From contig JAAILG010000096.1 of assembly GCA_012026655.1 (NCBI GenBank), positions 1 through 64,000 on the forward strand: a stretch of 64,000 bases of DNA. The letters are read 5' to 3'. The notes beneath the pieces were generated by a model. It saw nothing but the letters and a program-made list of their open reading frames with translations, was not told the DNA's origin and searched no databases. This document shows, piece after piece, positions 3,612-56,735 of the stretch (position 1 is the first letter of the stretch; the number at the start of each line of letters is the position of its first letter). The stretch is from Hydrolagus affinis. Taxonomy: Eukaryota. Both the position numbers and the translations under genes were made by a program.

Positions 3612-3940
3612 ACAATAATACAATCCTAGCATTTGATATAGCATCTGATCATGTTATTGAAACGTCTCCAAGCTCTTCACAGAATATGCTGTAAAGTGAG
3701 CTCTGATGAACGATCATAGACCTGAAACGTTAACTCATTTTTCTCTCTTCATAGACGCTGCTTGATCTGCTGCGTGTTCCCAGCGTCTTCTGTGTCTATA
3801 CCAGATTTCTAGTATCTGCAGTACTTTGCCTTTTGTTATGCTGTAAAGTGAATTGACTTTATATTTTCTGGGCGATACACAGCAGCCAATTGTACACGCC
3901 GTGTTCCACAAACAGTTATGGATTGAGTGACCAAATTATT
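3612..3940 (-). mobile_element. SINE 3' half interrupted by insert 3700-3836
   Basis: SINE consensus resumes after a duplicated TATGCTGTAAAGTGA. Confidence 0.85.
3700..3836 (+). mobile_element. Short Penelope-like element with minimal hammerhead core; 15-bp TSD
   Basis: CTGATGA 3703-3709, stem-loop, GAAACGTT 3724-3731, AACTC; perfect TSD 3685-3699 / 3837-3851. Confidence 0.75.
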
Positions 3941-4256
3941 ATAGAGGGGGTGGTAGGGGAAAAGAAGGATAATAGGATTAATTGGATAGTCCTATCAGAG
4001 CCAGAACAGGCACGATGGCTCACTGTGCCAGACGTTTATATGGTTTTATGGATGTAGATGGTGGTTTTTGATGCAGAACAGTCTAACCAAATACTCTTAT
4101 GAATTGGGTTCCTATCTGAAAACCAACCCAAAGGATTTCTGTGACTCTGGGTTTGATGTATGAACTGTGTATTGTTTTACCGTTGCTGTCCATTGCCAGG
4201 TGATTAATGTGTCACTCAAAAGCCTCTTTACCTTTTTTGTTTTCCCAACAGGAAGA

Positions 4257-4566
4257 ATGTTCTTGAATAAAGAACAGATTGCCCTGATCGGGCAAGTATT
4301 TGAGTCTTATGTCCAGGAACACCACAAAAATGACATTGTCAGCATTCTGCAGGGACCTGACAGCGGAGCTCATTATCCCATTGTGGTGAATGCACTGACC
4401 CTGTTCGAAATCAATATGGAGATCGGTGAATACCTAAATGCATTTCCTAATGAAATCCTTCCTATATTTGACAATGCACTGAGAAGAGCATCAATGACAA
4501 TTCTGCAGGCTTACCCGGAGCAGAATAATTTGGTCATGAAACACAATCTTCACGCCAGAATTTCAG
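4257..4566 (+). CDS. MCM9: MCM9 coding exon 1 ([18 protein letters not shown]...NLHARIS)
   Basis: Acceptor tttcccaacag ends at 4251, ATG at 4257, donor TCAG|gtcagt at 4567; MCM9 N-terminal domain. Confidence 0.95.
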
Positions 4567-4810
4567 GTCAGTAGGTTAAACCTAAAAAAAATTCTTATGA
4601 AGGTTGTAATCTTTTCTGACTTTGGTTATGAAAACTGTAGATTGACTTATTTTGGTATATTCCAGATTTTGCATGGGAGCAAGTCCAGAATTAATACCAC
4701 TTCAGTTTATGCTAAAATCTCGAATCAATTTTCCTCCTAAATGAAGGAAATGGGAAGAGTTGATATTAGGTGGAGAATTAAGGTTTGGATCGATGAACTC
4801 ATAAAACGTG

Positions 4811-5129
4811 TGAAGTCCTGTACCTTAATGGTTAGAGCATTTGCCTTACAAACGAGTAACAAGAGAGACCTGGGTTCGATTTCAGGCAGGATGAAATCTT
4901 GGGCAAGTTTCCTTACTCTACATACCTAATAATAATCCCTAATTAAAATTAATAATTTGTTTTTTAATCCAAGACTGTTTGTGGGACCCACCTGTGCACA
5001 ATTGGCTGCCGTGTTTCGCCCACAAATATACAGTCAATTCACTTTACAGTATATTTTGTGAAGTGCTTTGAGACATCTGGAAGATGTGAAAAGCGCGATA
5101 TCAAATGCAATCAAAGTTAATTATTATTA
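4811..5129 (+). mobile_element. Full-length tRNA-derived SINE
   Basis: A box TGGTTAGAGC, B box GGTTCGATT, body and ATT tail. Confidence 0.9.
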
Positions 5130-5933
5130 ACTTTTGCACTTTATATAGCTAATCACAAACTAATTAGCAAAAAGTGCAGCAAAAATTGCAGGTTGTCAGT
5201 AATCTTCATTCTGATGATAACAGTTAATAGTGTAGTTTTTTAAAAAAGGTATTGAATGAGATACCAACAGTGTTCATGGTGCCTCACGGCAGAGAAAGCA
5301 CTTTGAGAAAGTACTTTGAGATCTCCCATAGAGAGCCTCATGTGAGTTGTATGAACCTGCAAGAGCTCAGCTCAAGGGGTATTTTATGTTCAAGCTGAGT
5401 TCTCACAAGTTGATTCTCATTTTCGTGCTGTGTTAAGATGGTTAACCAGTCATTGAACTATTTTCTTATTCATCCTCTGACAATGCAGAGCTCGCTCCCC
5501 CAGCACTATATTGGAGCATTAGCCTAGAACTATTTCATGGTTGTAAATAATTGCTGGATTTTAAGTTTAGTGTATAAGATGGTGCAGCTGCTCTTTAAAA
5601 CAGTATCTGCAGGGATGGTTAACTTTAAATTTTGTTTTGGACTGTTCAAATTTTGGACTGAGATTTCACTTGTGAGAACTCAACTTGAACACAAAATAAC
5701 CCTCGAGCTGAGCTCTTGCGGGTTATTCTGATGTATGATCATTTTTAGGCTACAGGACACAGGATGCACTTTGCAGTAAATCCTGTGAAGTTCGTTGAGA
5801 CATTTTTCCCCTCCTCCCCAGTTAAAAGATTCCAAAATAAATGCTAGGGTTGTTGTTATATTATTATTATTATTAGTCACCCAGACCAATAACACTGCCA
5901 TTACCATATTATTGGATGTTACTTTTCTTGGTA

Positions 5934-6846
5934 CAGGTATCCCCCACTTAACGAAAGGTTTAGGGACTTCAAAACCCCTCGTTAAGCGAAAATTGCGTTA
6001 AGCGGGCGGGAGGAAGGTCCCTACAGTGTTTCCGTATAGGAAAAAATTTGTTCTCAGTAATGCCATGCACCTAGCCTAGCGCTAACATTTACAGTGTATC
6101 AGCGACAGCATAAGGTAGGTAGCACTGCTATTGAAGGCAGGAAGAGAGAGTTAAAGAGACAGAGAGAGACTGTGAGTGAGACTGTGACAGCCAGAGACTC
6201 AAACAGAGAGAGAAAGAGACACACAGAGAGAGAGAGAGATACAGAGAGGGACAGAGAGAGAGAAAAAGAGAGCGCGACCCAGACAGACAGAGAGAGAGAC
6301 AGAGAGAGACAGGAAAGAGACACAGAGAGCGAGAGACAGAGAGAGGGAAAGAGACACGGAGAGAGAGACAGTGAGANNNNNNNNNNNNNNNNNNNNNNNN
6401 NNNNNNNNNNNNNNNNNNNNNNNNNNNNNNNNNNNNNNNNNNNNNNNNNNNNNNNNNNNNNNNNNNNNNNNNNNNNNNNNNNNNNNNNNNNNNNNNNNNN
6501 NNNNNNNNNNNNNNNNNNNNNNNNNNNNNNGACAGAGGGAGACTGAGACAGAGACAGAGAGAGAGAGACTGAGAAAGAGAGAGACAGAGAGAAGGAGAGA
6601 CAGACAGAGCATCCTATCGCTTAAGCTCCTCCCATACTGCAGCTTTCTCTTGGATTAGGTGGCTCAGCAGTAAGTGTGTGTATGTATGTGCGCTTGTGTC
6701 GCGGAGGCTGCCGGGAGACGAGCACGAGATTTAAACTTTCGTTATAGCGAGCGCAGCCTTCGCTAAGCGTATAGTGGGGTACAAATAGAAACCCTCGTTA
6801 TAGTGAAGTTTCGTTAACAGGGCGTTCGGTAAGCGGGGGCTACCTG
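5934..6846. mobile_element. Tigger/pogo-like MITE with internal GA-rich tract
   Basis: TIRs CAGGTATCCCCCACTTAACGAA / TTCGGTAAGCGGGGGCTACCTG flanked by TA on both sides. Confidence 0.85.
6143..6610. repeat. (GA/GACA)n low-complexity tract containing assembly gap 6377-6530
   Basis: Read directly from the sequence; run of N. Confidence 0.95.
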
Positions 6847-7743
6847 TATGTTCTTAGAACTTCCTAAAATAGCTACTTTTCGTAGCCAGTTTACATTTTA
6901 TTCACCAGATATGTTGACAAACATTCTGAACAGACCCAGTTGCACCGACGATTATATGAACTATGTTTGTGTTATACTGTCACATATATCTGCATTTCAA
7001 TTTGTAAATCAACATATTTCCTGATCTTCTCTAGTTCCTCATTTCTTACATTTTAATGACTTGGGAATAGCCACATCAATAATACTCCATGTATAGTCTA
7101 TTTGGTTATTTATGAAATATCTGGTTTGTTGCAATTTTTTTTAATCTGTATGTACTTGTGAGTCCCAAATTATTGTGAATGTTAATCTTTGATGTCACAG
7201 CCTTTATTGTTGTTAAATGTGATGCCAAATATTTTTCATACCAGAAATCCCATTGCTTTTGTTTTATGAATGTTGTTAAAAAGAACTACTGCATTTTTAT
7301 TTTACTGCAGAATATTCATTGGGGTTTATCTTGCAGTCATATTTAGAAAGTATGGAACATGACTTACTCAGATGTGCCATACCTCCCACCCCATCATACA
7401 CACTATTCCCAATGCTGAGCTGGAAGCTGTGTGATGTATTTGGCTTACAGATCAGGGCTTTTACTAAACAAAATAATCAGAGTAAAGCCATAACACAGAA
7501 GCTGAACACTCGACATCGCAGCTATCAGCATTGACAACATTGACAAGAGACTGGTATGGATCCACCTGCAGAGTTTAGTATCTGAATAATTCATTTCCAA
7601 TACATAAAGTGTCTCTAAATTGACACCGCACATTGAGACTCCACTGGTGCATGTGAAGCATTGTACGTGTTGCTAATTACTTGATGGTAATGGTATTCAA
7701 GAGATCAATGTAATAACCTGAATTTTCTCTTTTCATACTTCAG

Positions 7744-8060
7744 GTTTACCACTTTGTCCTGAACTGACAAGGGATCATATTCCAAAAACGAGAGACGTGG
7801 GTCATTTCCTTTCAGTCATGGGGACTGTCATACGCACTGGGATAGTGAAGGTACTCGAGTTCGAGCATGAATACATGTGCAACAAGTGCCGACATGTCTT
7901 CCCGGTATCTGTAGACTTTGAGCAGTTTTATACTTTCTGCCGTCCTACCTCCTGTCCCAATGAAGAAGGCTGCAACTCAACCAAATTCACATGTCTGTCG
8001 GGATCTTCATCAGCCCTTTCGAGATGTAAAGATTACCAAGAAATAAAAATTCAGGAACAG
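7744..8060 (+). CDS. MCM9: MCM9 coding exon 2 ([15 protein letters not shown]...CNKC...CPNEEGC...QEIKIQEQ), OB fold/Zn finger
   Basis: cttcag|GTTTA acceptor, CAG|gtgatt donor; MCM zinc-finger cysteines. Confidence 0.96.
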
Positions 8061-8188
8061 GTGATTGATTATAAAGATATTGCGCTTTAGTTTTATTGTA
8101 TTGTACGTCTCTTGAATCATAACCATGACAAAATGTGAATATTCGAAATTTTTACTAAATTGCAGTAATGATCTTCTCAGGCTTTTTG

Positions 8189-8527
8189 TGGAGTCCTGTA
8201 GCTCAGTGGTTAGAGCACTCGCCTTACATGCGAGAGACCTGGGTTCAATTCCAGGCAGGCCGAAACCCTGGGCAAGTTTCCTTACTCCACACGCCTAATA
8301 ATCCCTCCCCAAAAAAATAATGAATTGGTTATTTCAAATTGGTTATTTAATTGGTTATTTTTATTGGTTATTTCATGACTGTTGTAGTACACTGCTGTGT
8401 GCAATTGGCTGCTGCGTTTCACCCACATATATACAGTCAATTCACTTAACAGTATATTCTGTGAAATACTTTGAAACGTATAGAAGACGTGAAAAGCACT
8501 ATATCAAATGCAAGGATTATTATTATT
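8189..8527 (+). mobile_element. Full-length tRNA-derived SINE
   Basis: GGAGTCCTGTAGCTCAGTGGTTAGAGC head; internal 4x ATTGGTTATTT. Confidence 0.9.
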
Positions 8528-9381
8528 TTCTCTTCTGATGGGATTACCCGCTACCTGGGGTGAATTCCAGATGTTGTTTCTTCCCTAATCTGAGGCCAAT
8601 TATATCATATAATTACAAAACAATTTGCATTTGTATAGCAGCTTTCATGTCAGGAGGTACTCTCAATGCACTTGAATTATGTATAGCACTTCTGGTGCAA
8701 CGCTGGACCACTTAACATAAATGTGGACAGAAAATGTTCCTGTTCTGCATTGCTCTGCTCCACACACATTGAATTATCAGGGAGAAGATAAACAAATTTG
8801 GATCGACAGTTAATTTGAAGCCAATATTTCTGGGATTAGAATGAAGCCGCGATGGGAAATTCCATTATAAACAAGGAACTAAAAGAGATCTATAGTATTA
8901 AAGAGTTTCTGCCGAGATACAAAGAGGTGACAGTGAGACTGCTGGAGTGGTACGTCAATGCATTGAGCCAATGGAATGGTAGGGTGTGGCTTTACAACTG
9001 ATCCCCATATCTAGTTCTAAGCAAGATGTTCAGGAGGAAGTGCTGAACACAGGTTTGGTGTTTCTCTACAGAGGTGAATTACCTTGTCGGCTCTTGCACC
9101 TCTCTCGCAGCTGGTAATAATATAATGATAATCCTTCCATTTGATATAGCGCTTTTCACGTCTCAAAGACGTCTGGTACTAGCAATGCTGTGGTGACTCC
9201 GAGAATAGGTTGCCTGCCAGTCATAGAGTGACGTGGGAGTTGTTCGACTAGGGGAGGGATACATGTGCTGGAAGCTGTTTATTCATTCAGAGCACAATTT
9301 CTTCCTTCCGCTTCAGATAAAGTTATCCCTTATACTCACATTTCACTTGCACATCACTGCATGTATTCAGCTTTCCAGGAC

Positions 9382-9768
9382 AATAATAATCCTTGTATTT
9401 GACATAGGGCTTCTTCTAGACATCTCAAAGTGAATAATGCTTCACAGAGTTTGCATTATTCACATGTAAAGTGAATTGACTGTATATATGTGGGTGAAAC
9501 GCTGCAGCCAATTGCTCACAGCAGTGTCCCACAAACAGTCAATTTGAAATTGAAATCCAATTTCAAATTGGATTGAAATGACCAATTTATTATATATATT
9601 TTTATATATTATATATATTTTATATTAATACATTATATATATTTTTGAGGGATTATTATTAGGCATATGGAGTAAGGAAACTTGTCTAAGGTTTCACCCT
9701 GCCTGGAATTGAAACCAGGTCTCTCGCTTGTGAGGAGACTGCTCTAACCACTGAGCTACACGACTCCA
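9382..9768 (-). mobile_element. Full-length tRNA-derived SINE
   Basis: Reverse-complement match to consensus; expanded AT tract. Confidence 0.9.
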
Positions 9769-10394
9769 ACATTATTTCAACATTTGCATCAAGCATTTCT
9801 TGGTTACGAGTACAGTGTGGGGAAAGCTCCCTCTGAGTGCTTGGAAAAAGTGTGCCTTCTCTCCTAACCTCACTGGTTCTGTAAATTTCATTTCACCAGC
9901 AACTGGGTTTAGAGTGCTCTAACATATTTGCTTATGCTTAGGAGAAACGTTTTCACTCTTTGAGATGTGAAATGTATGTCCTGTCAAGTAAGATGATAAA
10001 GACAAGCGTTTATTGTGGTTTCAAGAGGGAAGTGGACAAGGATAGAGGCTGAAGGCGATTGCTTATAAGGCAGGCAGTGGGATTGAATGAACATGTTTCT
10101 CTGAGAGCTGTGCAGACTTGATGGCCCACATGACCTCCTTAAGTACTGTAAATTTCTATGACTTTATCATTCTATGATCTTCGAAACATTGAGGGGCTTG
10201 GGGAGGGAGAGAATTTAGTTTCATCCATTTAGTCTAGATAAGTATTAGAGATAAGAGGAGAGGAGAGAATTTCAACTCATTGTGCTAACCAGCCTCCCGA
10301 ATGCTTAGGGACAATGAGAAACAACAAGAACACATTCTTTATATTATAGCATCCTTCACAAGAGTAACACCTCAGAGCTTAGAAAGACAACATA

Positions 10395-10719
10395 TAATAA
10401 TATAATCCTTGCATTTTGATATAGCGCTTTTCACATCTTATTGATGTCTCAAAGCCCTTCACAGAATGTACTGAAAAGTGAATTGACTGTACATATAATT
10501 GTGGGCGAAACATGGCATCCAATTGCGCACAGCAGTGACCCACAAGCAGTCGTGGATTGAAATGACCAATTTATTATTGTGTTTTTTTTGGAGGGATTAT
10601 TATTAGGCGTGTGGAGTTAGGAAACTTGCCCAAGGTTTCGCCCTGACCTGCCTGGATTTGAACACAGGTCTCACGTAGGTAAGGCGAGTGCTCTAACCAC
10701 TGAGCTACAGGAGCTCCAC
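10395..10719 (-). mobile_element. Full-length tRNA-derived SINE
   Basis: Reverse-complement match to consensus. Confidence 0.9.
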
Positions 10720-10807
10720 ATACAGTTAATGTTCAGAATTTTCTTCTTGTTATGCAAAATAGCCATTTGCAATATTGCTTACGTACTATTCATGCTTCAA
10801 TCTCTAG

Positions 10808-10889
10808 GTTCAGAGACTGTCAGTGGGAAGCATACCTCGATCTTTATTAGTTATACTAGAAGATGACCTTGTGGATACCTGCAAGTCTG
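10808..10889 (+). CDS. MCM9: MCM9 coding exon 3 ([27 protein letters not shown])
   Basis: tctctag|GTT acceptor, TG|gtaatt donor; conserved MCM IPRS..LEDDLVD motif; too short for the ORF track. Confidence 0.95.
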
Positions 10890-11580
10890 GTAATTTATGA
10901 AAATTTATTACATATACATCGATAGTATATCCTGAGATAGCACTTTAACAAAAAATCCACATGACTTTCTGCCTTCACCCCATAGGCACGTCTCACAGAG
11001 AGTGTTGTAGAACATGGCTAAAGTACAGGATTGCTTATCTTCAAATTCAAAATCTTGATACTGTGAAACACTACATAAATACTGTAAATCTAGATTTGGG
11101 AAATTTCTCCCCGTATTTCATCAGTCATTAGAGTCTACATGAATAAATATATTTCGCTTTTTTTTTGCTAAGGTTGAATTCCCCTATTTCCAAAAATGTC
11201 ACATTTCATGTTGTTAATGTCAAAATGCTAGGAAATATAACAAAAAAATCTACAAGAAAGACCCATAATTAAAGGTAATTATTTAAGTTGAAATCTTGTG
11301 ACATTCAGCAATTATATGAAATGTCGTAGGATATATAATTGCTGAGACCCAAATTTAGATTTTTAAATTCACTTGTCAAGAAAACAATTTGCTGGTTTAA
11401 CATAGTCTAACATGCACCATATTGGTATCACACGTTTCAAGGCTTGCTGTTGATAGCTTTAATGCAGTAGAGAATTTTTTTGCCCAAATCTGAGAGTTTA
11501 CAGCACAGAATAAGGCAATTTTGTCCATTGTGTGTGCAGTTCTATATTCTCCACTATGTTACTGTGCCCTATGATATATG

Positions 11581-11867
11581 AATAATAATCCTTCCATTTG
11601 ATATAACGCTTTTCACATCTTCTAGTCATCCCAAAGCGCTTCAAGAATATACTGTAAAGTGAATCAACTGTATATATGTGGGCGAAACGCGGCACCCAAT
11701 TGTACACAGCAGTGTCCCACAATCTGTCGTGGATTGAAATGCCCAATTTTTTTTGAGGAGTATTGTTAGGCATGGAAACTTGCCCAAGGTTTCACCCTGC
11801 CTGGAATTGAAGCCAGGTTTCTTGCTTGTAAGGCGAGTGCTCTAACCACTGAGCTCCAGGACTCCAC
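11581..11867 (-). mobile_element. Full-length tRNA-derived SINE
   Basis: Reverse-complement match to consensus. Confidence 0.9.
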
Positions 11868-11975
11868 TGAGCTCCATCTGAACAAGTTTCTGTGCATAGT
11901 TTCTTATTGTTCCCAGGTGAATGACCAGATGCCAAATGCTTGGAAATAATATCTGAGGGCTTTGTTTTACAACAG

Positions 11976-12176: not shown

Positions 12177-12396
12177 GTGTGGAAAGGTCTGCTCTATAAA
12201 CCTTCTAACTTTTCATTTTACAGAGGTACATTTTCAATTTACATGCAATTTACAACCAAAGTATCATTCTTTGTACTGCATTATAACTGTGTTCAACTGT
12301 TGTTGAATTACATATGTGTCCATTAGGCTTCACAGTCAGTTAATAACATGCTGCTTCTTGTCATCACAAAAACCCTTTAATGTTCTTATTTTTAAG

Positions 12397-14630: not shown

Positions 14631-14665
<35 letters not shown>

Positions 14666-14820: not shown

Positions 14821-15428
14821 TCAAACCCTAAATTCTTTTGAACTCTCCCCAACACAATAATGTTATTTCTAGAATATAAGGGCCAACCTTGTGATTTTTA
14901 TGGTGAGAATGCTCTGAAGATGTTCTCAAGATGCATCCTTTATTGCTCCTTTTACTTTGGTTGATAGCCGGTTCACTTTCACTCAAGACTTTTACTGTAC
15001 AATCAATAATTCCTACAGATTCTTTCCCTGTTCCATTTTTCAATGGATCCACTTGAAGCGACACCCTACATTTATATGCTGGATAATCTGGTTTCCACTT
15101 ACCTCCAACACATTGAGTTTAGAAAGTGAAGTCAGTTCAGCAAGAATCTATAATTGTGCATACAATTATGTGCAGCATACAGTATGTGCATGGATACTTT
15201 CAGCCAGCAGGGGGGGATATTTTTCCTAAGTATGCACTGTTTATTCACGTGGATGGTTAAGTGAGAGATCAATATGGTTATACTACAAAATAACAGAGTT
15301 TAAGTCGTGATGTGGACTATGTATGGGTGAGAGAGAAACTTTGGGGAAACCTGGGAGAAAGGTCAGTAAATATAATGTTTAATGGCAAAACAGACTTGCA
15401 CTTGACAATGAGTTGCTGTGTGGACTTG

Positions 15429-15750
15429 TGGAGTCCTGTATCTCAGTGGTTAGAGCACTCGCCTCACGAGCGAGAGACCTGGATTTGATTCCCGGCCAGG
15501 GCAAAACTTTGGGCAAATTCCCTTACTGATGCCTGATAATAATCCCTTAAGAAAAATACAATAATAACTTCAATCCACGACTGTTTGTGGGACATTGCCA
15601 TATGCAGTTGGCTGCCATGTTTGCCCACAAATGTATAGTCAGTTCACTTTACAGAATACAGTATTCAGTATATACACAGTATATTCTGTGAAGTGCTTTG
15701 AGATGTCTAGAAGACAAGTGAAAAGCAGTTTATCAAATGCAAGGATTGTT
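15429..15750 (+). mobile_element. Full-length tRNA-derived SINE
   Basis: Consensus match; local duplications at 15652-15680. Confidence 0.88.
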
Positions 15751-16136
15751 CTTAAATTTATTGACAATTGGAGCAGCACTTAATCAATTCTTTGCATCGT
15801 TTTCTGTTCTCTTTGACTGTCTATATATTAAAAATATTGTTGTTATCCATTTCTGAAACCATGATCTGAAACTTGTCCACATTTTTACAATAATGTGAAG
15901 CATTCACTGGATACATTGGTCAAATGTAAATGCGAAGATTACTTTATTACAATGCAGCACACTTTACATTTATATGTACTTGCAAATTTCTTTCAATATG
16001 TCTTTCCATATGTTTTTCATAGCTTGATGTTTATTTTGACCTTGTCAATTGGCAACCGCGTTTCACCCACAAAATACACAATTCACTTGGCAATGACATG
16101 ATCTCGCGCTATATCAAATTCAAGGACTATTGTTAT

Positions 16137-23663: not shown

Positions 23664-24250
23664 TAAAACAAAAACAGCAACAAACTTACATTTGTATAGT
23701 GCCTTTCACATCAGGAGGACGTCCCAAGGCGCTGGACAGTTACTGCTTTGGACCTGAGCAGGGGGCGGAGGGAAGGGGAAGATTAGGAGATGGATTCATC
23801 AAAGAGGAGAGTCTTGAGATGAGACCTGAAGAAGGTCAGGGAGGGGGCGAGGCGGAGGGACTGCGGGATGGAGTTCCAGAGGTTGGGGGCAGAGTGGCTG
23901 AAAGATCACGCACCAATGGTGGGGCGGGGGACGTGAAGCAGGTCAGAGCCTGATTAGCGGAGAAGGCGGGCAGGTTGGTAAGGGGATAGGAGGTCACGGA
24001 TGTGGGGTGCGGCGAGGTTGTGGAGGGGTTTAAATGTGAGGATCAGAATCTTGAATTGGATCCTCTGGATGATGGGGAGCCGAGTCAGGGGAGGATGGGG
24101 GAGATGGGATCACAGAGTTTGGAATGGTAGCGGACACGGGCCGCAGAGTTTGAATTATCTGCAGCCTATGGAGGGAGGAATTGGGAAGGCCGACCAGCAG
24201 GGTGTTTGCATGATCTAGCCAGGATGTAATGAAGGTGTGGATGTGGCTGT
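23664..24250 (-). mobile_element. L2 LINE 3' fragment
   Basis: IHTFITSWLDHANTLLVGLPNSSLHRLQIIQ; tail. Confidence 0.85.
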
Positions 24251-24628
24251 CAGGATAGCGATAAAATAGAAGATCTGGCACAAGAATGAAAGCTTGATGA
24301 GTCTTTTGTGCAGTACAGTTCAGTACAGTACAATACAACAAGAGGATGTCCCAAAGCACTTTTCTATGCACATTTAGATGCAGCAACATGCAATATATTG
24401 CAATCCTCTTGAGATGTTACTTAAAAAATTGATATCCCAATGTTCACAGCACTTTACTGATAGGGGGCTTGTATTCTGCTTATTGGCAAATTTATCAAAT
24501 TTTGAAAGCAAGAATAATTATTCACTACTTAACCTTTTGTAAACGTACCCCCACCCCCCCTCCCAAATGTTTATAATTGCCGCACTTTATTTTCTATAAA
24601 TCTAGTTGACGATGTACTCTGTTTCCAG

Positions 24629-25224: not shown

Positions 25225-26695
25225 AATTCATGGTGAAAAAGAACAGGGGTCAGCTTCTGAAGGGAGAAAGTTAAATGAGCAGACTGACCTGTTTCCTGAC
25301 AATTCCACTGATTGTTCAAAGAATGAGAGGAATCACAGTGATTTCCTGGACAACAATCAAAGCGAAAATGGTTTGAACTGGTTTATTGGTTTTCAAAGTG
25401 AATTTGAACCCAAAATAGGTGGCATTGTACAGATTGGCTCTCCTATACTAAAGGATTCTTTCCTACCTGTAGTGGCTGAACCAAGTGTCTGTCCAGAGAC
25501 AGCAATAAATGCAGAGGGTGTTGCAAAAAACCTAGATCCTTCCAACAGGACTTTAGAACCTGAAACCTGTTGTGGTCCAAGTCACATGAGCTCAACCGGT
25601 TCAACCATCAAGACCATGAGAATTGATCAAACAGTCTGCACTGAAGGACAGATAAATGATGGAGCTTGTGCTTCTTCAAACACATTGAGGCCTGTGATAG
25701 AAACCCATGGATCGAAACAGCTACACTCAAGAAGAGTTGCACAAAGTAAAATCTTGTTTGGAAACACCCCAAATTTGAAAGCAAGTCACCTGTCTGAAAG
25801 TAAGGAAACTAGTGCAATTAATGTGAATGACTTCTCATCCACACCAAATGGTGGCAGCTTAGACCAAGGTCCATTGCATAGTACACCTGCTGCAGCACCT
25901 CAGTGCGTACCCTTGCTTAGACCAAGTAATACAATGCACGAGGCTTGCTTGCCTCCCGCAGCCCCTGATGCCAATGAGAATTCTAATCTTCTACTGGCTA
26001 AATTAAAAGCATTTGAATTCAAACAAAAGCCCAAACTAAGTCATTCGGTTTCCGGCTCTTTGACACCTAGTATCAAAACTGCTGAACTTGGGGTACTGAA
26101 TGCTGAACTCTCCTGTGCTTCGCAGCCTCCTGTACAAAGCAGTGATGCTGGAGAAAAGCAGCAGAGAACATTTGCATGCCCCTCTAAAACTAGGTTTCCG
26201 CATAAGACACCAGGCAAAGATGTACATGTTGAAGTCAGTGGTGGAACTGAGCTGCCGTTAGAAGCTCCCCTTGCTGTGCCAAAGTGTTCTAATGCTGTAC
26301 AGGGGCATGTAGTGATGGATGCACTAAAACATCCAATCTGTACAAAACCAAATGTGGATCAACAAAACCCACAAAATTCAACTACTACAAATCAGGGAAA
26401 AGTATCCTCCAATATATTAGCGAAACTTAGCAAATTCTCCTTCAGGCCACCTCCTGAAAAGGGAATTGACAATGTGACTGGGAAAACTTGTGACGGTAAG
26501 AACGTGGTAGTTGGGAAACCTAATAATTTGCCTGCATCAACAACCAAGAAAAGGAAGACTTTTGGGTTTGCACAAACTCACAAAGTAGAATCCATTGCAA
26601 AGAAGTATCTTTTTACTACTGATGAGTTGGATGATGATGATGGTATGCTGGATTTTGACTGGAATGAGGAATCGAAGAAAAACCCCACATCATAA
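25225..26695 (+). CDS. MCM9: MCM9 terminal coding exon, long largely disordered C-terminal extension ending ...LDFDWNEESKKNPTS*
   Basis: tttacag|A acceptor, phase matches exon 11, in frame with ORF 25373..26695; KKRK basic motif and acidic-aromatic end. Confidence 0.93.
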
Positions 26696-32874: not shown

Positions 32875-33186
32875 TCTCAGTGGTTAGAACGCTCGCCTTA
32901 CATGTGTGAGACCTGTGTTTGAATCCAGGCAGGTCAGAGTGAAACCTTGGGCAAGTTTCCTTACTCCACACGCCTAATAATAATCCCCCCCCAAAAAAAC
33001 TCACAATAATAAAATTGGTCATTTCAATCCATGACTGCTTGTGGGACACTGCTGTGCGCAATTGGCTGTCACTTTTCTCCCACAAATATACAGTCAATTC
33101 ACTTTACAGTATATTCTGTGAAGCGCTTTGAGACGTCGATAAGGTGAAAAGCGCTATATCAAATGCAAGGATTATTATTATTATTA
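32875..33186 (+). mobile_element. Near full-length tRNA-derived SINE
   Basis: Consensus match. Confidence 0.9.
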
Positions 33187-34124
33187 CTGTATTATTATTA
33201 TTGCCTCACAGTGTACCTCACAGTACCTTGAACTTTAATATGAAGGTGTCTGCCTGCCTCAGTTTGTAGCACCCTCACCTAGGTCAGAAGGTTGTGGGTC
33301 CAAGCCTCTCATCTCCGGGCTTTGAACTCAGTATAGGCTGACGCTCAAAATACAATGCTGGAGGAAAACTCCATTGAGGGTGATGCTGATCTATTATGCC
33401 GAGACATGAAACCATGCTCTATCTATCTGCCTGTTTAGGTTGAAATACTATGTGTGCGTTGTGCAACATTTGTACTAACATAATGGCCCCATTGAAAGCT
33501 GGTAGCATGTTAACATATTCTTGTTTTCTATCATGTGTTAAATCATCATGTGATTTAAGTTACTGAAAACAACTATAATTCCTGAACAGACTTCAGAATT
33601 GGAATTTCATGCATGGGATTAGTCAAGTTTGAGCTTAGTTGAACTTTTCACTTCAGTAGCACAGCAATGTTGATATTTGTGGATGAATGAATTGCCAGAT
33701 GGTAATCAACTTATTTTTATTTTGGATGCTGTTTTCTACAATTTTTACTTCAGGCATTAGATACACATATTTCTTTAATACCGCTGAAACAATTGTGCGT
33801 ATTGTTGTCTTGAGATTTGTTGGCTCCTGCTGACGATGGAGTTGGGAAGAATTCATGAAAGAGAAAATTATCCCTGCAAGAGTACAACAGGAAAATTGGC
33901 TGAGCCCAAATGAAACAATAAATAATACAAGGTAACTTTTGTGGTAGTTTTAGAACATTCCTTATGTTATTTAACAAGTGTTTGATATCAGGTGGTACAC
34001 CAGTCAACCAGATAAATTAAATGAACATTTTCCAGCTCATCCAACCCCTTTTCTAAAAGTACTCCAAGATGCTATCTTGTATGATCACTGATCCCAGACG
34101 TTGACAATTGTAATATTTCTAAAT

Positions 34125-35400
34125 GGAATCCTCTGGTGATGGGAAGCCAGTGGAGTCGGGCAAGAATGGGGATGATAGGGTCGCAGAGCCTGGTGTGGGA
34201 GGGGACACGGGCTGCAGAAGTTGGTAGGGATAAGGAGGTCACAAAGGTAGGGTGGGGCAAGGCCATGGAGGGCTTTAAAGATGAGGACCAGGACCGTTCA
34301 TTGAATCTTTTGGGTGATGGGGAGCCAATGGTCATGCTAGAAAGGGGGGAGATGGGGTCATGGAGCTTGGTGCGGTAGCGGACAGGGGCTGCAGAGTTCT
34401 GGATGATCTGCAGACTATGGAGGGAGGAGTTGGGGAGGCCAACAAGCAGGGCATTGGCATACCTGAGTCTGGACATGACGAAGGCATGAATGAGAGTTTC
34501 AGCATCCTGAGGGGTGAGGTAGTGCCAGAGTCAGGCAATATTGCGGTAGTGATGGAAGGCAGAGTGGGTCATGGCTTGGATGTGGGGGAGGAAAGACAGT
34601 TGAGGATCAAACAAGAGACCTAGGTTCCTGACTGTCTTGGTGAGGTTGATACTGCCTGCCTGAGGTGTGAAAGCATTGGCGTGAACCAATCAGAGGGCCT
34701 CGCTCTTGTTGACATTGAACTGTAGAAAGTTAGCTCTCATCTAGGACTTGATGTCTCACAGGCAGTCCGTCAGGATAGCAGTGGTCTTGGAGTCGAGGGT
34801 AGAGGCAAAAAAATATTGGGTGTCATCCGCATACATATGGAAGTTGACCCCATGTCTGCGGATGATGTCACCAAGTGGGAGTATGCAGATATTGAAAAGT
34901 AGGGGGCCAAGGACAGAGCACTGGGGGAATGCCACAGCTGACTGCGGAGGCTGGAGGAAAAGCCATTGGTGGCGAAAAAGTAGAGACGGTGAGAGAGGTA
35001 AGAATTGAACCAGGCAAGGGCAAGATCGTAAAGATTAAACAGGGAGGAGAGGCGGTATAGGAGGATGTAGTGGTCGATGGTGTCAAAGGCAGCAGAGAGG
35101 TCAAGGGATGACTTTGGGGGACAATAGACAAGGGGGATTTTGAGGGAGAGACTGGAGGGGTGGTAGAGAGTAAGATGCTCAAAAGAAGAGAAGGTTCCAG
35201 AGGAGTAAAGGGAACCGGGAGATGAGAGCCACACTGCCACCATGGCGGTTAGGCCATGGGGATTTGTGAAATGTGTAGCTTGAACAGGGTTAAGGTGTCA
35301 CCTAGGGTAAATCACGTTTTGGTGGGAGCGAGGATGTCGATGTTTTCATTGATAGTGAGGTTGTGGATTGTGAGTGACTTATTGGAGAGAGCATGGACAT
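34125..35400 (-). mobile_element. Internally deleted, degenerate L2 ORF2 (endonuclease, RT and C-terminal pieces)
   Basis: SFEHL..VYCPPK (EN), LDLSAAFDTIDH, HMYADDT (RT), LHWLPI; frameshifts and stops. Confidence 0.88.
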
Positions 35401-45934: not shown

Positions 45935-46270
45935 TAATACTGTAATAATAATTCTTGCATTTGATATAGCACTTTTTAAGGCTTCTAGATATCTCAAAGC
46001 GCTTCATATAGTACAGTATGCTGTAAATTGAATTGACTGTATACATGTGGGTGAAATGCAGCAGCCAAATTATGCACAGCAGTGTCCCACAAACAGTCAT
46101 GAAAGGAATGACCAATATTATCTGGACTATTGTTCGACAGCACACGAATAGAACTCACTTATCTTTCGAATAGTGTCATGACATCTTTAATATACACCTG
46201 AACAGGCAGAAAGGACCTTGGAGTAACAATATTTTCAAGCCCATTGAGTGGAGTATTGGTTCATCCCCAC
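45935..46270 (-). mobile_element. Deu-type SINE (3' tail plus Deu domain)
   Basis: Tail consensus followed by cgaatagtgtcatgacatcttt...cacctgaacaggcag. Confidence 0.7.
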
Positions 46271-49200: not shown

Positions 49201-50224
49201 GTGCAATGTAATGAGAATAATTATTTCTCACAGAGACCAACTGATATTCAATATTTTCACCAATAAGCGCTTTGAGATGTCGATAAGATGTGAAAAGCGC
49301 TATATTAAATTGTAAGGATTATTATTATTATCTTTAGTGGAAAATGCTTACTGGTCATGAATGACTGTGATTCCATACTGAACAGGTAAAGATCACATTG
49401 AATTGCTTGCTTTGATTCATATTGTAACATTAAAGTTCTGATTGAATGGTAAAAGAATTAAACTTGAATCATCGCAGTTATTGACTTCAAGGCTGTTTCC
49501 CAGGAAAAAAACTTCCTACAAAATCCTCTGTCAAACAGCCAAAATGGCTGCGACTTTGTGGGGAAAAAAAATGATGGAACTTCCTAAAATTTCCAAATGG
49601 AAGAGAGGACAAGAGTTTAATACAGTGCATGTAAATATTTAGACTTATTTGCCAATCCATGTCTGAGTGCTGGAGTTGGAATAAACCAGGATTGCGCTAC
49701 TATTTGAAATGAACACTGACATCAAATGGAATTTAGCTGACATTTCCATTTGTACAAATGGCCCTTAACCTCATTTAACCGATTGCCATCGGGCACTTTA
49801 TTTCTCTCCTGTTGATGACAGTTCAGCACAAAACACGTGGGGAAAATAGAATTGCCTGTGAAGTTCAGGTGCTAAAATAATGAAACACTGAAAGTGCAAA
49901 TGCTAGTTTCCAGCCTGCATGCAAATGGAAAACAGTTTTGTGCTGCATTTTTCTAATCTCACTTCAGTCCAGTCAGAAATCGAGACCCTTGCTCAGCTGA
50001 ATCTTTAGTTAATTTTGATTTGATCCCAGCATTTACAACTTAGCAGGGGAGTCCAAGAGCCTGTTTTTAATTTATTAGCATCATTGGATTGGAAATGTTT
50101 GCGTTGTTTTATGCCTCATACTTTATCGGAATTATTTTACATTATATCAAATGCCTGTTCATTGGATGAGTGAACTGAGATACAGTACTGTACTGTACTA
50201 CCCCTCACCCCAGTACACCACACT

Positions 50225-50730
50225 ACCTGCCTCGCCACTTTCTTCCCCACCCCCCTCTCCTGCAGGTGCTGTCTCAGGCTTTGGTACATTTTCGTGGTGT
50301 TCTGGGGCAGAGCATTGGGACGTCCTCCTGATGTGAAAGGAGCTACACAAATGTAATATTGTTGTTGTATTATGTTATTGTTGAGCATTCCACATTTATT
50401 ATTATTGTTGTATATTTTCACAACAGATGGCATTTTACAATCTTCTTTGGAAGAAGTCACCTGATCTCACTTCCAACCGGCTTTGCTCTGGTTTTAAGAT
50501 TGCAACAAAACTTTTCTTTTCATAACAGCCTTCGCACAGAGCAGCATCCCGGAGTGCTTGACTGTCTGACCCCGAGCCAGAGGGAGAACGAGGCGGAGGT
50601 TACGCAAAGCAGGATCAACCAGGAAGGTCTTTAGACCAGGTTCGAAAGTGGGGAGGGAGGCGAAGAGATTGAGGGAGACAGTTCCAGAGTTTCGGGCTTA
50701 ATGACTGAAGGCATGGCCACTGATGGTAGA
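50225..50730. mobile_element. Two L2 3' fragments in opposite orientation (50225-50370 +, 50490-50730 -)
   Basis: Tail and 3' UTR similarity to other L2 copies in the window. Confidence 0.6.
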
Positions 50731-51494
50731 GATTACATTTGTATTTAGGGTTAAAGTTTGCCAAGTTTAGACCATTACCACGAGATAGCAGAGTATCTCT
50801 CCCAGCAACAGGACTCTTCAGATCAGATAGCCACCATTTGTGTTTTTATTGAAGCAAAGAAATGTTTTAGTGTGATTTCTTTTCAGTTTATTTTTTACTT
50901 TATTCTGGAGAGTAATAAGCAATTACAAGTTGAGTTATTAAACTGAAGAGCTCAAAATAAAATCTAATTTACCCACAAAACACACAGTCACTACACTTTA
51001 CAATAAATCCTTTCAAATTGCTTCGAAAGACCCCCTGATGGTGCAATGTCAAATGCAAGGATTATTATAATTAAATCAAAATGACTGGTGAGATTAATAT
51101 AGTCTTTGAGTTTCTTTATAAAATAATTTCCCCCTTTGGGTCTCCTGAGCCAGAATTGCATATGGAAAATTGGTATTAAGGAAACAGGTGCATGTTATCA
51201 GGTGCTTCATGTCAACCCCAGCTGCTACATAGTGTGTAATTAAGCAGATACAAATTTACATTTATATAGAGCTTTTCATGTCAGAAACACATTCCAAAGT
51301 GCTTGACATTGCTGGCTCGGCACCGGTGTTCATATATCCATTATTTGGAACCCACTTTTGTGGTTTGCAGAGAGGTACGCAGCTGCTGCTGAAGCTCTGC
51401 ACCTCCATCTGGGAGAACCTTTGCTTATTGGAAGGGATGTGTGTCCACTCTGTGGTAGGGAGATTGTGGCAAAGCTCCCTCATAGTGAGGGCTT

Positions 51495-51686
51495 AAATAA
51501 TAATAACAACATCAATAATAATAATCCTAGTATTTTATATAGTGCTTGTCATGTTTTCTCGATGTCTCAAAGTGCTTCATAGTATATACTGTAAAGTGAA
51601 TTGACTGTATATTTCTGGGCGAAACTCAGCAGCTAATTGCGCACAGCAATGTCCCACAAACAGTCATAGATTGAAGTGACCAATTT
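51495..51686 (-). mobile_element. SINE 3' half
   Basis: Consensus match. Confidence 0.85.
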
Positions 51687-52619
51687 AGAGACCAGAACTC
51701 TCGAAGGCGAATACAAATTACAGTGGACTTAGCTGGATAAGTAGCAGCAAATCTTGTCAGGTGCTGCTTTCAATGGCAAACTCTGTAGTATTTGCTGGTT
51801 AGACTCCAGCAGTACCTCAATGCACAACTCTTCGGTCCCCAAACCTCAGCTCTTGCCAACTTGCACTTAAAACTCTTCAAAATTAGATAATCAGGATGCA
51901 TCCCTCCTGGGAGAGAGTGCACATTCCATTCCTCACACAGGGAAATTTCCAAGTGTAGATGGCATACATATGTGGAACTCTCAGTGGTGGTGGGTTTCTG
52001 CGTGTGTTAAAACAACCGGCAAACCAAATAAATAAATCTAAAAGTAATATTTACTTGGGTTTGTCACTGTGATAAGAACTTTGTACCTCAAGAATTTAGG
52101 TTGCTTGAGGTTGCTCTGTGTGTTAATAATAGCAAAAATGGAGCCATGTCTGAATGAGGCTGGAGTGTCAGGAGATTGAATGCACAGTATTGGTAGGCTG
52201 TTCAGCACTACAGGGACTGAAATTTCTACTTGAGAATTGATGTAACATTCATTTGTAATAAAAAGAAAAAGGCAATTTGAGCTTGTCGAGGCCTCGCTGA
52301 AGGCTATTAATCAAAAACTTAGCAAAATTCTGCAATTGGAAAGGGAAATAAAGAAGTGAGCATTTAGGTCAGAGCCTGGAGTTAGTGAGAAATGAAAGAT
52401 GCTGAGTTGTATCTACTATGTGAGCCCTGAAAGGTATCAACTAAGCAGGTTGACACATTACATTATTAACTGATATTGTGCAGTTTTAGCAAGCAGAAGA
52501 ATTTCAGGTACATGCAGATGAATAATAAAGTAAATAATGCTTATAGTTATTATAGCATCTTTCATGTCGGGGGTGGGTGGGTTAGGGTTGTTGGTTTGGG
52601 GACCAGGAGAAATTCCCTT

Positions 52620-52850
52620 CACATTTTCAATTAATGCGGAAGATCTTTCACATCCACCTAAACAGGCAGACAGGACCTTGGTATTGTTCTAAAGGATGTA
52701 AACTCCAACAATACAGCACTTCACCTTCACCAGCCTAGGCTTCACTTGAGTGTCAGCTTGCACTATATGAGTTCCAACTCCCATTGTGGGTTTTGAACCC
52801 ATAAACATTTGATTCAGAGGCAACAACATCACCACCTGAACCATGCTGAT
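52620..52850 (-). mobile_element. Old Deu-type SINE 5' part
   Basis: Similar to 59070-59490. Confidence 0.6.
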
Positions 52851-52854
52851 TTTG

Positions 52855-53170
52855 CTCCTGTAGCTCAGTGGTTAGAGCACTCGCCTTACAAGTGTGAGAC
52901 CTGTAATCGAATCCAGGCACATCAGGTCAAACCCTTGGACAAGTTTCTTCACACCACACGCCTAATAATAATCCGTCAAAAAAAAACAATAATAAAATTG
53001 GTCATTTCAATCCACGAATGTTTGTGGGACACTGCTGTGCGCAATTGGCTGCCGCATTTCGCCCACAAATATACAGTCAATTCACTTTACGGTATATTCA
53101 GTGAAATGTTTTGAGACGTTGATAAGATGTGAAAAGTGCTCTATCAAATGCAAGGATTATTATTATTATT
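52855..53170 (+). mobile_element. Full-length tRNA-derived SINE
   Basis: Consensus match. Confidence 0.9.
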
Positions 53171-53639
53171 CTTTACGATAGATACTAATCATCATGTCTT
53201 ATTTGTTGAAGATGTGTGAAAATAAACCTTGGAATTTAAGGGTTACCATCTTAATGGTTGGGAACTTTCAGTTTTGTTCTACACACAGGGTGAGATTACA
53301 CAAATCAAACTGAAACCCACCATTTGACATGGAATGGGAATGAAGATGCCAGAATTGAAATTTGTCCACCGTTTGTTTCTGAAAGCTCTTGGGTCATCCA
53401 AGAGTAATCATCATCACTTTCAATCCACATCACTCATACAGCATAATATCAATTAAACGGCTCCTGGCAGCATTTCCTGCAAGTGGTGTCAAGATCAGAG
53501 CTCGTGTAATGGGTGTTTGGCTGAACCCCAATTTATACGGCACAATTTGCTTTCAATTCCTTTTTTTCCTACCTTTTTTTAATCAAACAGCTGGATGATT
53601 ATTATTAGGGTGTTATAATTAGACAGCGAGTTGTTCGGT

Positions 53640-53803
53640 TCCGGAATGTATCGCCTGAAAGGTTGGTGGAAGCCAATTTGAATAACAACTTTTAAGAGAG
53701 AAGTAGATAATTATTTGGGGAGGATGAGCTTGCAGGGCTATGGGGAGCTCTTCAATAGATACAATGAGTCAAATGGCTTCTTTCTGTGCTGTATAATTCT
53801 ATG
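53640..53803 (+). mobile_element. CR1 3' end fragment
   Basis: ggaat...cctgaaaggttggtggaagc...aatggcttctttctgtgctgtataattctatg. Confidence 0.7.
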
Positions 53804-55590
53804 AAGAGGGGAAAGAGGGGGTAAGGTGGAAGAATTGACAGAGAGAGTCCAAAAGCTTTGGCAGGTAGTGGCTGAAAGCGTACAGTGCTGTTGCCATTTC
53901 ATTTAATTGTGTTACACAACAGAGTACCACTGTAGCACCCCACAGCAAAGTGCTGTTTTATCTGGCCTTATTGCCATGTTTATGTTGTTAGCAATCTGTC
54001 TCTGAAATACCAGAGGGTGAAACAAGGAGGCAATTGCATTCCCTTGTAACTCATCTTAGATTTCCTTGTAACTCAACAGAAATAGCATGCTTTGCGCCAG
54101 TATAACGTACTTGTTGTGGTGCATGTTTTGGGTAGGTTCAAATTTGAAGTTCCTGTCTGAGAGTTTTGCAACAAAGTTGAAGCACCACAACTTCCTGATA
54201 TTACTAATGGTGTAGCTGTGAGGAGGCAATGAGAAAAGCAAGTAAGTCAACACTTCGCTGGATTTTCCTGAAGTTAAGTTCCAAATCTGAAACATAGGTA
54301 GTCAATGGGTGTGCAAAATATACATTTACCGCTTTTATAAATTTACATGGTGAAGGACACACATGTGGTTTGGTTCTTCTGTAAAGATCATGGCCTCTTT
54401 TAACAAGAGGAAATGGGTTGGTGGGGGGAAGGGTGAAAAATAATTCTGCTCTCAGATGCAAAGCATGTAACAGATGCTAGAAACTGATTTTTATGCTGTG
54501 ACTATGTTGCACATGCTCCAGTTTTCACAGGCAAATAGACAAATAGAAGGTACAGGGCAATGTCCACTTTGTGCATGATATCACTTGTTTTTTTTTTAGT
54601 GATTTATCACTGTGTTGGTTAAATGTTTATATAGATTTATTTTATTTTGAGCAGGTTACAACTCTTTAACATAATCATTAGATTCAGATAACATTGTAAA
54701 CCACAACGGTGACATTGCTTTCATGGATTCTATCTTGTTCTCTGCTATAACAGTTAAATATGTATTGCATTTATTATTTCTATGAAATCTCCAGAGATTT
54801 AAATACATAATTATAATCATTGTATTTGATTCACACCAGGAAGACGTCTCAAAGCGCTTTACGGGATTTACTAAAGTGTAGTGACCATGTATGTTGTTGG
54901 CATTTCTTGTCATTTTATGTAAAGTAACAGAACCTAGGACAGTACCAAATCAAACTTAACTTATGGGTAAATTTTCCTCCACCACCTTCCCTCACCCTGT
55001 GTTATCGTCTGTTGAAAGAGTTGAACTTATTTTACCTGCTGCCAGAATGCAATGATGTTCTAGTCTCACACTGTTCTAGTGTCTTGTGATGCCAGTGTAT
55101 CACGAAAGCTTGTTCAATGCGACTTCCTCCCAGTGACATATGGAAACCTTGAACTACTCCATTTTACGAATGATCAAATTCCAGGAACACAAATTTGGTT
55201 GAATTGAGATTTTACTTGTTTTATTTTCCTGATATTACAGAATATTTGTGATGTTTATCACTTAACTGAAGGAAATCAACAAGCAGCTTTAACTAATAAT
55301 AAGAATCCTCACATTTGAAATAGTGCTTTTCACATCGCAAGGAATCTTCACAGGATATACTGTAAAGTGTAATGAATGTATTCCGTAGGCGAATACACCT
55401 GATTGTTTTCAATTTAAGTTAACGGACTATGTTTAGTCAGTAAATTATCTTTCGAGTAGCTGTTATTATTTTCACACAGGTGTAAACAGTGTTATAATCA
55501 AAGCAATATGGCTGAAATTTGTTCCTTTGTTTTGAACAGCAGGTAAGAAGCATCTAATAGAATTCAGGACAATATTAGCAACATCTTATA

Positions 55591-55946
55591 TAATAATAAT
55601 AATCCTTGTACTTGATATAGCACTTTTCATGTCTTCGAGTCGTCGCAAAGGGCTTCACAGAATATACTGTAAAGTGAATTGACTGTTTATATGTGGGTGA
55701 AACTTGGCAACCAATTGCGCATAGCAGTGTCCCACAAACAGTCTGCAGTGTTGGTGGTTGGGAGATGGGATGGGTAGGGAGGCAGGTGGATTGGGTGACC
55801 AATTATTATTGTGTTTATTTGTGGGATTATTATCAGGCGTGGAACAAGGAAACTTGCCCAAGGTTTCGCCCTAACCTGCCTGGAATCGAACCCAGGTCAC
55901 CGGTTTGCAAGGCGAGTTCTCTAACCATTGAGCTACAGGACTCCAC
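55591..55946 (-). mobile_element. Full-length tRNA-derived SINE with 42-nt insert (55744-55785)
   Basis: Consensus match on both sides of the insert. Confidence 0.9.
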
Positions 55947-56374
55947 TATGTTCTGCTACTTGTCCTGATGTTCTGAAATATATTTATGGGATGTTTGGGT
56001 TGCTAAGCAGCTCCTGTCAGCACTCAGCTATTCCCCAATGATTAATGAATAAGAGTCTGTGGGATCATGACATCTATTGTTCTACATGACTAGCTGTACT
56101 CAAAGTACACTGGAAATAGTTCATGTTAATCTTTCTTCAGTGCCAAGTAGAAACCTACTCTTTGGGAGTTTTTCATTTGGCACTGATATGGATATTATAG
56201 ATTAACGTGTTTGTATTATTATATTGGGTTTGTCTTTAGTCTGCCTCCCTACCCATCCCATCTCTCATCCCATCTCCCAACCACCACCACTGTAGCTGAA
56301 ACCCTCATACATACTTTCATCACCTCCAGAGTTGGCTTCTCAGTGAATACTATTTCCATTTATACAGCATATTT

Positions 56375-56735
56375 ATAACAATAGTAATCTTTGCCTTAGA
56401 AAAAGCACCTTATCACAGCGTTGAGGCGTCTCAAATCGCTTAACAGAATATACTTCAAAGTGAACAAAAACGCAAAATATTGCTGATGCCGGGAATCTGA
56501 AACAAAAACAGAAATTGCTAGGAACACTCAGCAGGTAGGTCAGGCAGCATCTATGAAGAAAGGAAAAGTGAGTCAACCTTTCGGGTTCACGAGCCTTCGT
56601 CAGAATTATACTGTAAGTGAATTGGCTGTATTTTGTGAGCAAAGCACAGCAGCCAATTGCACACAGGAGTGTCCCACAAACAGTCGTGGATTGAGTGATG
56701 ACACTTTTAAAAAGAATTTCAAGGGATTATTACCC
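56375..56735 (-). mobile_element. SINE 3' half interrupted by insert 56465-56606
   Basis: Consensus resumes after a duplicated TATACTGTAA(A)GTGAA. Confidence 0.8.
56465..56606 (-). mobile_element. Short Penelope-like element with minimal hammerhead core
   Basis: Minus strand CTGACGA (56603-56597), stem-loop, GAAAGGTTGACTC; body homologous to 3700-3836; diverged TSD 56449-56464 / 56607-56621. Confidence 0.72.

Follow-up and report, generated by a model that had tools for sequence, protein, structure and literature searches.

Introduction

Some retroelements occur again and again at a single position of a repetitive host sequence, as R2 does in ribosomal DNA (rDNA) and Tx1L in Tx1D. How Penelope-like elements (PLEs) insert is poorly known. 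In vitro, the purified PLE protein of Anolis nicks and extends both strands of its target, with a preference for 5'-ATT-3' on each, and it initiates reverse transcription at a fixed position within the element, 111-118 nt into the open reading frame (ORF) (PMC11167929). The Anolis element carries a hammerhead at the junction of its pseudo-long terminal repeat (pLTR) and its ORF, and cleavage by this hammerhead is not required for insertion (PMC11167929). Here we describe two homologous inserts, termed e1 and e2, that interrupt copies of an abundant short interspersed nuclear element (SINE) in a stretch of 64,000 nucleotides from the fish Hydrolagus affinis (GCA_012026655.1, contig JAAILG010000096.1, positions 1 to 64,000 of the forward strand), which is referred to as the window. 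Both inserts are probably dead-on-arrival terminal fragments of PLEs that were retroposed at one and the same pair of nicks, and the SINE site would be a favoured landing place rather than a dedicated one.

Several other described systems bear on these inserts. PLE copies include solo and inverted pLTRs and a tail that contains the start of the ORF, and they show microhomology at the 5' junction, a feature known for both PLEs and long interspersed nuclear elements (LINEs) (PMC3846280, in excerpt). Minimal hammerheads in animal genomes are mostly single motifs, described as 'probably related to truncated PLEs', and also occur as opposite-strand pairs (PMC4209133, in excerpt). The non-LTR retrozymes of metazoans, tandem repeats of 170-400 nt, contain complete canonical type I hammerheads and are expressed as circular RNAs (circRNAs) (PMC7229834, in excerpt). 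With respect to nested transposable elements (TEs), most TE classes of the human genome have insertion hotspots, among them a single-nucleotide hotspot in Alu, and the hotspots of hAT elements are used in both orientations (PMC2836564, in excerpt).

Results and discussion

Two homologous inserts occupy one site of the dominant SINE

The dominant SINE of the window is tRNA-derived, about 330 bp long and ends in an (ATT)n tail, as seen in an alignment of seven full-length window copies. The seven tRNA-like heads recognised in the window by Rfam belong to this SINE. A profile built from the seven full-length copies produced 50 matches that together cover 9,544 bases (14.9% of the window); 37 of these matches cover model positions 222-264, and about 39 window copies bear the insertion site. 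Each insert divides a minus-strand copy at model positions 234-248 (in SINE sense, TCACTTTACAGTATA), and it is exactly over this stretch that the split nhmmer matches overlap. At locus 1, model positions 232-319 match at 3701->3614 and model positions 143-248 at 3942->3837; at locus 2, model positions 232-323 match at 56465->56373 and model positions 120-258 at 56732->56596. The insert is antisense to its host at locus 1 and in the sense of its host at locus 2 (Table 1).

The two inserts share 73.2% identity over 138 nt (blastn, E 1.4e-17), and 101 of the 142 columns of their global alignment are identical. A profile of e1 and e2, searched with nhmmer with its filters off, matched these two alone in the window (E 2.9e-44 and 1.7e-40), with no third copy in the 64 kb and the next-best match at E 3.7. 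Their 5' ends agree within 2 nt, just ahead of a CUGAUGA-type box that lies 1-3 bases inside each end, and they share the same aligned 3' end position, both terminating in TTTTG(T). Each locus holds a single arm; neither a tandem nor an inverted (head-to-head) arrangement was found.

The inserts are flanked by target-site duplications (TSDs) of the same SINE segment. The locus 1 duplication is identical at 15/15 positions and cannot be extended on either side, and that of locus 2 is identical at about 12/15 positions, with one A deleted. The latter can also be read as 16 bp, or as up to about 20 bp, because the SINE and the element share TTCTG at the 5' junction. Both copies of the locus 1 TSD carry a G variant, as would follow from duplication of an existing site.

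Table 1. Positions of the two inserts, their split SINE hosts and the hammerhead remnants within the window
Feature	Position	Strand	Basis and remarks
e1, 137-bp insert, probable terminal fragment of a PLE	3700..3836	+	antisense to host SINE; blastn, nhmmer, contig pieces
e2, ~141-bp insert, probable terminal fragment of a PLE of another subfamily	56465..56606	-	same sense as host SINE; older insertion
Host copy 1, 3' part (model 232-319)	3614..3699	-	nhmmer split match; left TSD is the last 15 bases, 3685-3699
Host copy 1, 5' part (model 143-248)	3837..3942	-	5'-truncated copy; right TSD is the first 15 bases, 3837-3851
Host copy 2, 3' part (model 232-323)	56373..56464	-	split match; decayed left TSD 56449-56463/4
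Host copy 2, 5' part (model 120-258)	56607..56732	-	split match; decayed right TSD 56607-56620/1
Minimal type I hammerhead remnant of e1	3703..3731	+	pattern match; CUGAUGA 3703-3709, GAAA 3724-3727
Decayed hammerhead remnant of e2	56575..56603	-	pattern match; CUGACGA box, GAAA, AGGU replacing the ACGU palindrome

Copying of a composite SINE together with its insert, or a duplication or gene conversion between the loci, would also place the inserts in the same host family at the same position. However, the inserts are oppositely oriented within hosts of the same orientation, the two host copies are no more alike than any pair of SINE copies, their flanks beyond the SINE are unrelated, and the locus 1 TSD copies the variant of its own host. 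Among the pieces listed in a contig survey (see below), moreover, no contig joins the element to the SINE. The composite and duplication readings were rejected on these comparisons of hosts, flanks, TSDs, orientation and contigs, and we hold them to be extremely improbable. The conclusion that the inserts are independent retroposition events in different, already present SINE copies is supported.

An earlier note on this DNA had reported two homologous inserts, present just twice in 64 kb, that interrupt minus-strand SINE copies in opposite orientations, are flanked by a perfect and a decayed TSD, and look like independent events. All of this stood up to the searches above, whereas its description of the A>G variant as private to the locus 1 host did not, since two further SINE copies, at 46017 and 62433, also carry this G.

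The window contains one assembly gap, an N run at 6377-6530 within a purine-rich (GA)n-like simple repeat that is on the same strand on both sides (6200-6620). It lies outside the inserts and their host SINEs, at distances of about 2.5 kb (locus 1) and about 50 kb (locus 2); because the loci were analysed separately, no claim made here needs continuity across it.

One pair of nicks may account for both orientations

In SINE sense, locus 1 reads ...CAATTCACTTTACAGCATA / reverse complement of e1 / TCACTTTACAGCATATTCTG... and locus 2 reads ...CAATTCACTTACAGTATA / e2 / (T)TCACTTTGAAGTATATTCTG.... The priming end at locus 1 corresponds to a cut of the sense strand at TATA^TTC (TATA^TTCTG), in the loop of a conserved 3' hairpin of the SINE. 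At locus 2 it corresponds to a cut of the antisense strand at GTGA^ATTG or GTGAA^TTG, the two possibilities arising because one base is ambiguous. The priming nicks are on opposite strands, 15-16 bp apart, and each is at an ATT, the motif preferred by the Anolis PLE protein. Microhomology is present at both 5' junctions, namely GTGA at locus 1 and TTCTG at locus 2.

We propose that each insert would have been made by target-primed reverse transcription in a different pre-existing SINE copy, and that the same staggered pair of nicks would have been used at both loci. At locus 1, the cDNA would have been primed from the sense-strand nick, which places the insert antisense to the SINE, and at locus 2 from the nick on the antisense strand, which places it in SINE sense. 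One pair of nicks, with priming from either of them, would thus explain why the loci share a TSD and differ in orientation, and priming from both nicks at once would be expected to yield head-to-head foldbacks. Cleavage by the hammerhead would have no part in making the template. Ribozyme-cut RNA was rejected as the template, since each insert already begins about 30 nt before the putative cleavage site. The site may recur as a target because it offers the PLE-preferred ATT at both nicks and because it is among the genome's most repeated short sequences. It would be a favoured landing place and not a dedicated home, most copies of the family being elsewhere.

A natural pair of insertions at the same nicks, running in opposite directions, is the genomic footprint predicted by the model of a PLE protein that nicks and extends both strands at ATT (PMC11167929). 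If a genome-wide peak of insertions in both orientations were present at this site, it would support that model in vivo and would offer bench work a defined natural target. At present, the case consists of two ordinary truncated PLE copies and one suggestive coincidence.

The inserts resemble truncated copies of Penelope-like elements

From 5' to 3', each insert carries a CUGAUGA-type box, a short helix II, GAAA, an ACGU-type tetranucleotide and UH, and this order matches the minimal type I hammerhead of PLEs (PMC4209133, in excerpt). In e1, helix II is weakened, the ACGU palindrome is present and the putative cleavage triplet GUU ends at 3731. The insert begins at the box in each case, and the element does not include the 5' strand of helix I. 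Neither insert carries a complete ribozyme. The earlier note had called the element hammerhead-bearing; its CUGAUGA and GAAA boxes are indeed there, but the missing strand of helix I and the lack of a match in Rfam (see below) leave only a remnant. Folding gave no support for a structured RNA: single-strand folds of e1 and e2 were not better than those of shuffled sequences (z-scores 0.15 and 0.26), and with flanks included the z-scores were 0.75 and -0.57. Most contigs of other copies (see below) differ from e1 at 3711 and 3713, within helix II, and these differing letters suggest that the source of the family had a better helix II than e1. The locus 1 flank GTGAGCT is able to pair with AACTCAT downstream, a pairing that we read as microhomology at the 5' junction and not as function.

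The extent of the element was compared with that of other copies in a survey of contigs assembled from three DNA runs (X1, X4 and X6); these runs may be from relatives. The statements that follow concern the longest 24 of 37,961 pieces, 20 of which contain the element and four only the SINE. Within the 20 element-bearing pieces, 16 end at 3832-3838 (ends over all, 3809-3838), while starts are spread over 3697-3727 and five fall at 3702. The element thus has a fixed 3' end and a 5' end that is almost fixed, in agreement with the fixed 3' end and variable 5' extent of PLEs. The inserts would come from two PLE subfamilies about 71-73% alike and would span about 135-140 nt, beginning with the minimal-hammerhead core at the pLTR/ORF junction and ending at the fixed 3' end.

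Several features are shared with truncated or solo-pLTR PLE copies: the CUGAUGA...GAAA boxes with an ACGU-type minimal helix III on the 5' side (PMC4209133; PMC3846280; PMC11167929), a fixed 3' end that follows the putative cleavage site by about 105 nt, TSDs of varying length, 5'-junction microhomology, the occurrence of single motifs, and nicks at ATT that are usable on either strand. The Penelope-like origin that had been suggested earlier finds support in the hammerhead boxes, the fixed 3' end, the ATT nicks and these Anolis parallels. What the analysis shows directly is the homology of the inserts, their ends, TSDs and orientations, the positions of the nicks and the spread of the other copies; the enzyme behind the nicks and the strength of any preference are inferred.

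The same fragments might instead represent a separate non-autonomous lineage, that is, a retrozyme-type or SINE-like hammerhead element with a fixed size of about 135 nt, for which a small RNA would be the template and a LINE might supply the mobility. Both window copies and several contigs have the same discrete ends, 5' and 3', the copy number is high, and RNA reads cover the element on both strands (run X13), although such reads may stem from host transcripts that carry copies. Like metazoan retrozymes, for which mobilisation by PLEs is presumed, the inserts are small, non-coding and associated with a hammerhead (PMC7229834, in excerpt). Unlike them, the inserts are not tandem repeats with complete canonical type I hammerheads expressed as circRNAs but single copies with part of a minimal hammerhead, and they start upstream of the cleavage site, at a distance that does not fit a ribozyme-cut template (PMC7229834, in excerpt). 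No go-back joint was present among the 15 joints listed of 170. Being single and not tandem, the inserts are not retrozymes as that source defines them, and the label retrozyme-like given to them by the earlier note is not supported. We give a separate lineage little credence and retain truncated PLE copies as the probable explanation.

Searches with sequence from the inserts and the site were negative within their reach. The stop-free frame of e2 had 0 matches in 1.84 billion protein representatives and no word-sharing candidate in a 5.8-billion protein set; with a query of 47 residues from a decayed copy, neither result shows absence. The exact pattern of the element had 0 matches in metagenome contigs, and that of the SINE site had 0 matches in metagenome, genome and viral contigs. 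On the minus strand, a 113-codon frame free of stops (56382-56720) runs across SINE, e2 and SINE, and its e2 part may be a relic of the start of a PLE ORF.

Most copies of the family probably lie outside the SINE site

An endonuclease that truly targets the SINE, recognising the sequence or the hairpin of its 3' stem-loop, would make SINEs the main landing pads of the element. Both window copies (2/2) are at the same position, for which the chance is about 9e-5 under uniform insertion, and the break in a further SINE copy, at 62899/62900, falls at the very edge of the 15-mer. The site coincides with the 5' arm and loop of the conserved hairpin, which has an 8-bp stem (model 237-244/251-258) and the loop TATATT (e.g., 33097-33118, plus strand); the fold of a single copy has an energy of -13.2 kcal/mol, and across 27 SINE copies pairing is seen in 303 of 351 cells.

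The contig survey gave a different picture. All 16 listed contigs that run on past the 3' end of the element, by 58-2,528 letters, enter sequence unlike the dominant SINE. The other four of the 20 element-bearing pieces, one of them identical to e1, have too little sequence past the 3' end to judge. No piece among the longest 24 follows the window past 3697 on the left or past 3838 on the right, longer ones ranking first, and neither junction is spanned. The element reached at most 0.6% (X1), 1.6% (X4) and 1.1% (X6) of the depth seen at the SINE site. A sequence-specific enzyme would, moreover, normally yield a single orientation. True targeting is in our estimation improbable, an element dedicated to the SINE is not supported, and the description SINE-parasitising put forward by the earlier note finds no support in either the depth or the contigs.

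The comparison with site-specific retrotransposons leads to the same point. As with R2 and Tx1L, insertion recurs at one position of a repeated host sequence. Those elements occur almost only at their site and in one orientation, whereas here most copies are elsewhere and both orientations are seen; a great majority of copies at one position and in one orientation was not found.

A 138-letter X1 contig (3719-3838) is identical to e1 over 120 letters, and its other 18 letters are unlike the TSD and SINE flank of the window. This contig may represent an allele, an assembly path or another copy, identical to e1, at a different place.

Coincidence, site preference and the points that oppose the PLE reading

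Under uniform insertion, the probability that the second insert falls at the SINE-family position of the first is 0.149 x 39/63846, or about 9e-5. The agreement could be pure coincidence, with insertion essentially random relative to the site and the pair noticed among hundreds of windows. The pair was in fact selected post hoc from 685 windows, and 14.9% of this stretch is SINE, with the site present in about 39 copies in 64 kb. With a chance of about 9e-5 for each pair, however, only a few in a hundred would be expected even over a few hundred pairs, and the loci agree in both nick positions, not in the region alone, with both priming nicks at ATT. Coincidence seems to us quite unlikely. The SINE site also supplies the commonest 18-, 20- and 22-mers of the window (8, 7 and 6 copies).

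Several observations count against the view that the inserts are truncated PLE copies retroposed at a favoured ATT nick pair, or limit how far it can be taken. The comparison with the Anolis protein is made at the level of the ATT motif (PMC11167929). The 3' end of the element is U/G-rich and is not the AC-rich stem-loop of the Anolis element. Rfam recognised no hammerhead family at either locus at E<=10, its seven matches in the whole window all being to tRNA. No pLTR was seen here, and the partner element, with its reverse transcriptase (RT) and GIY-YIG endonuclease, is unseen in the window: no PLE protein was present among the 10 of 15 window ORFs of at least 110 aa that were scanned against Pfam. 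The missing RT/GIY-YIG ORF is expected of a fragment of about 140 bp. The survey on which dispersal rests consists of contigs and not reads and is described here from its longest 24 of 37,961 pieces and 15 of 170 joints, and a SINE flank in the opposite orientation is not visible in it as a continuation.

A bare rule of ATT on both strands also leaves the two hits unlikely. The pattern AAT-N14-ATT occurs at 82 places in the window, of which 10 are at the SINE site (12%; 1.5% for two hits), and with spacings of N10-18 the site accounts for 19 of 668 places (2.8%; 0.08% for two hits). Either there is a preference beyond the bare ATT rule or the case was picked post hoc from many windows. Because ATT alone makes 2/2 hits unlikely, some further site preference is plausible, and a real but moderate preference for the SINE site would be a plausible size for it.

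Such a preference could lie in the hairpin. A PLE dimer that strongly prefers the conserved 3' hairpin of the dominant SINE, cutting one strand in the loop and the other at the base of the stem, is a speculative and on balance doubtful extension of the nick-pair model. Were it true, hundreds of thousands of SINE copies would serve as landing pads, the two loci would be in vivo evidence for PLE priming from either nick, and both the two orientations and the head-to-head foldbacks that arise when both nicks prime would be explained. RNAalifold found no consensus structure over the 27 SINE copies, and covariation was minimal, one pair showing a two-sided change in 2 copies. A 36-nt stretch around the hairpin is an imperfect palindrome, which accounts for offset reverse-strand matches. 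The hairpin may be the stem-loop by which a partner LINE recognises the SINE.

Repeated insertion at one position of an abundant host repeat is also seen in human nested TEs, which in that study are L1-driven Alu, MaLR, ERV1 and hAT, whereas the present case is a PLE fragment in a fish tRNA-SINE with two events (PMC2836564, in excerpt). Since hotspots of TEs within TEs are the rule in human, the SINE hotspot would be a new example and not a new phenomenon (PMC2836564, in excerpt). The earlier note knew of no description of anything similar; this is not supported in view of these human hotspots and of the nicking and extension of both strands at ATT by a PLE protein (PMC11167929). A limited literature search found no description of two PLE insertions at one SINE position.

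Further observations at the site and in its surroundings

The SINE copy that is broken at the left edge of the 15-mer (62899-63142, minus strand) has a full tRNA head. Its break at 62899/62900 joins it to a stretch of about 290 bp similar to the interior or the 3' region of the window's LINE-like repeat. A rearrangement or a further event at this site could have produced it. Two more SINE copies, at 15423-15796 (plus strand) and 9377-9770 (minus strand), contain extra pieces within the same 15-mer, of 25 bp and 10 bp, respectively. The 25-bp piece resembles stuttered copies of ACAGTAT. These pieces could be products of slippage or repair scars at an often-nicked site.

An ORF at 4167-4574 (plus strand) has a weak match to the MCM N-terminal domain (E 0.0067, below the cut-off) and resembles what we take to be the start of MCM9. 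The 440-codon ORF at 25373-26695 (plus strand) had no match in Pfam. Both inserts probably lie in or near introns of an MCM-like gene. Decayed fragments of a LINE ORF2 are present at 34770-35243, 34072-34476 and 24030-24389, all on the minus strand. A search with the LINE RT fragment gave nine weak matches, the closest being a reverse-transcriptase protein of Callorhinchus milii (55% identity, E 8.6e-15), and this RT piece fits both a cartilaginous fish and a LINE partner for the SINE.

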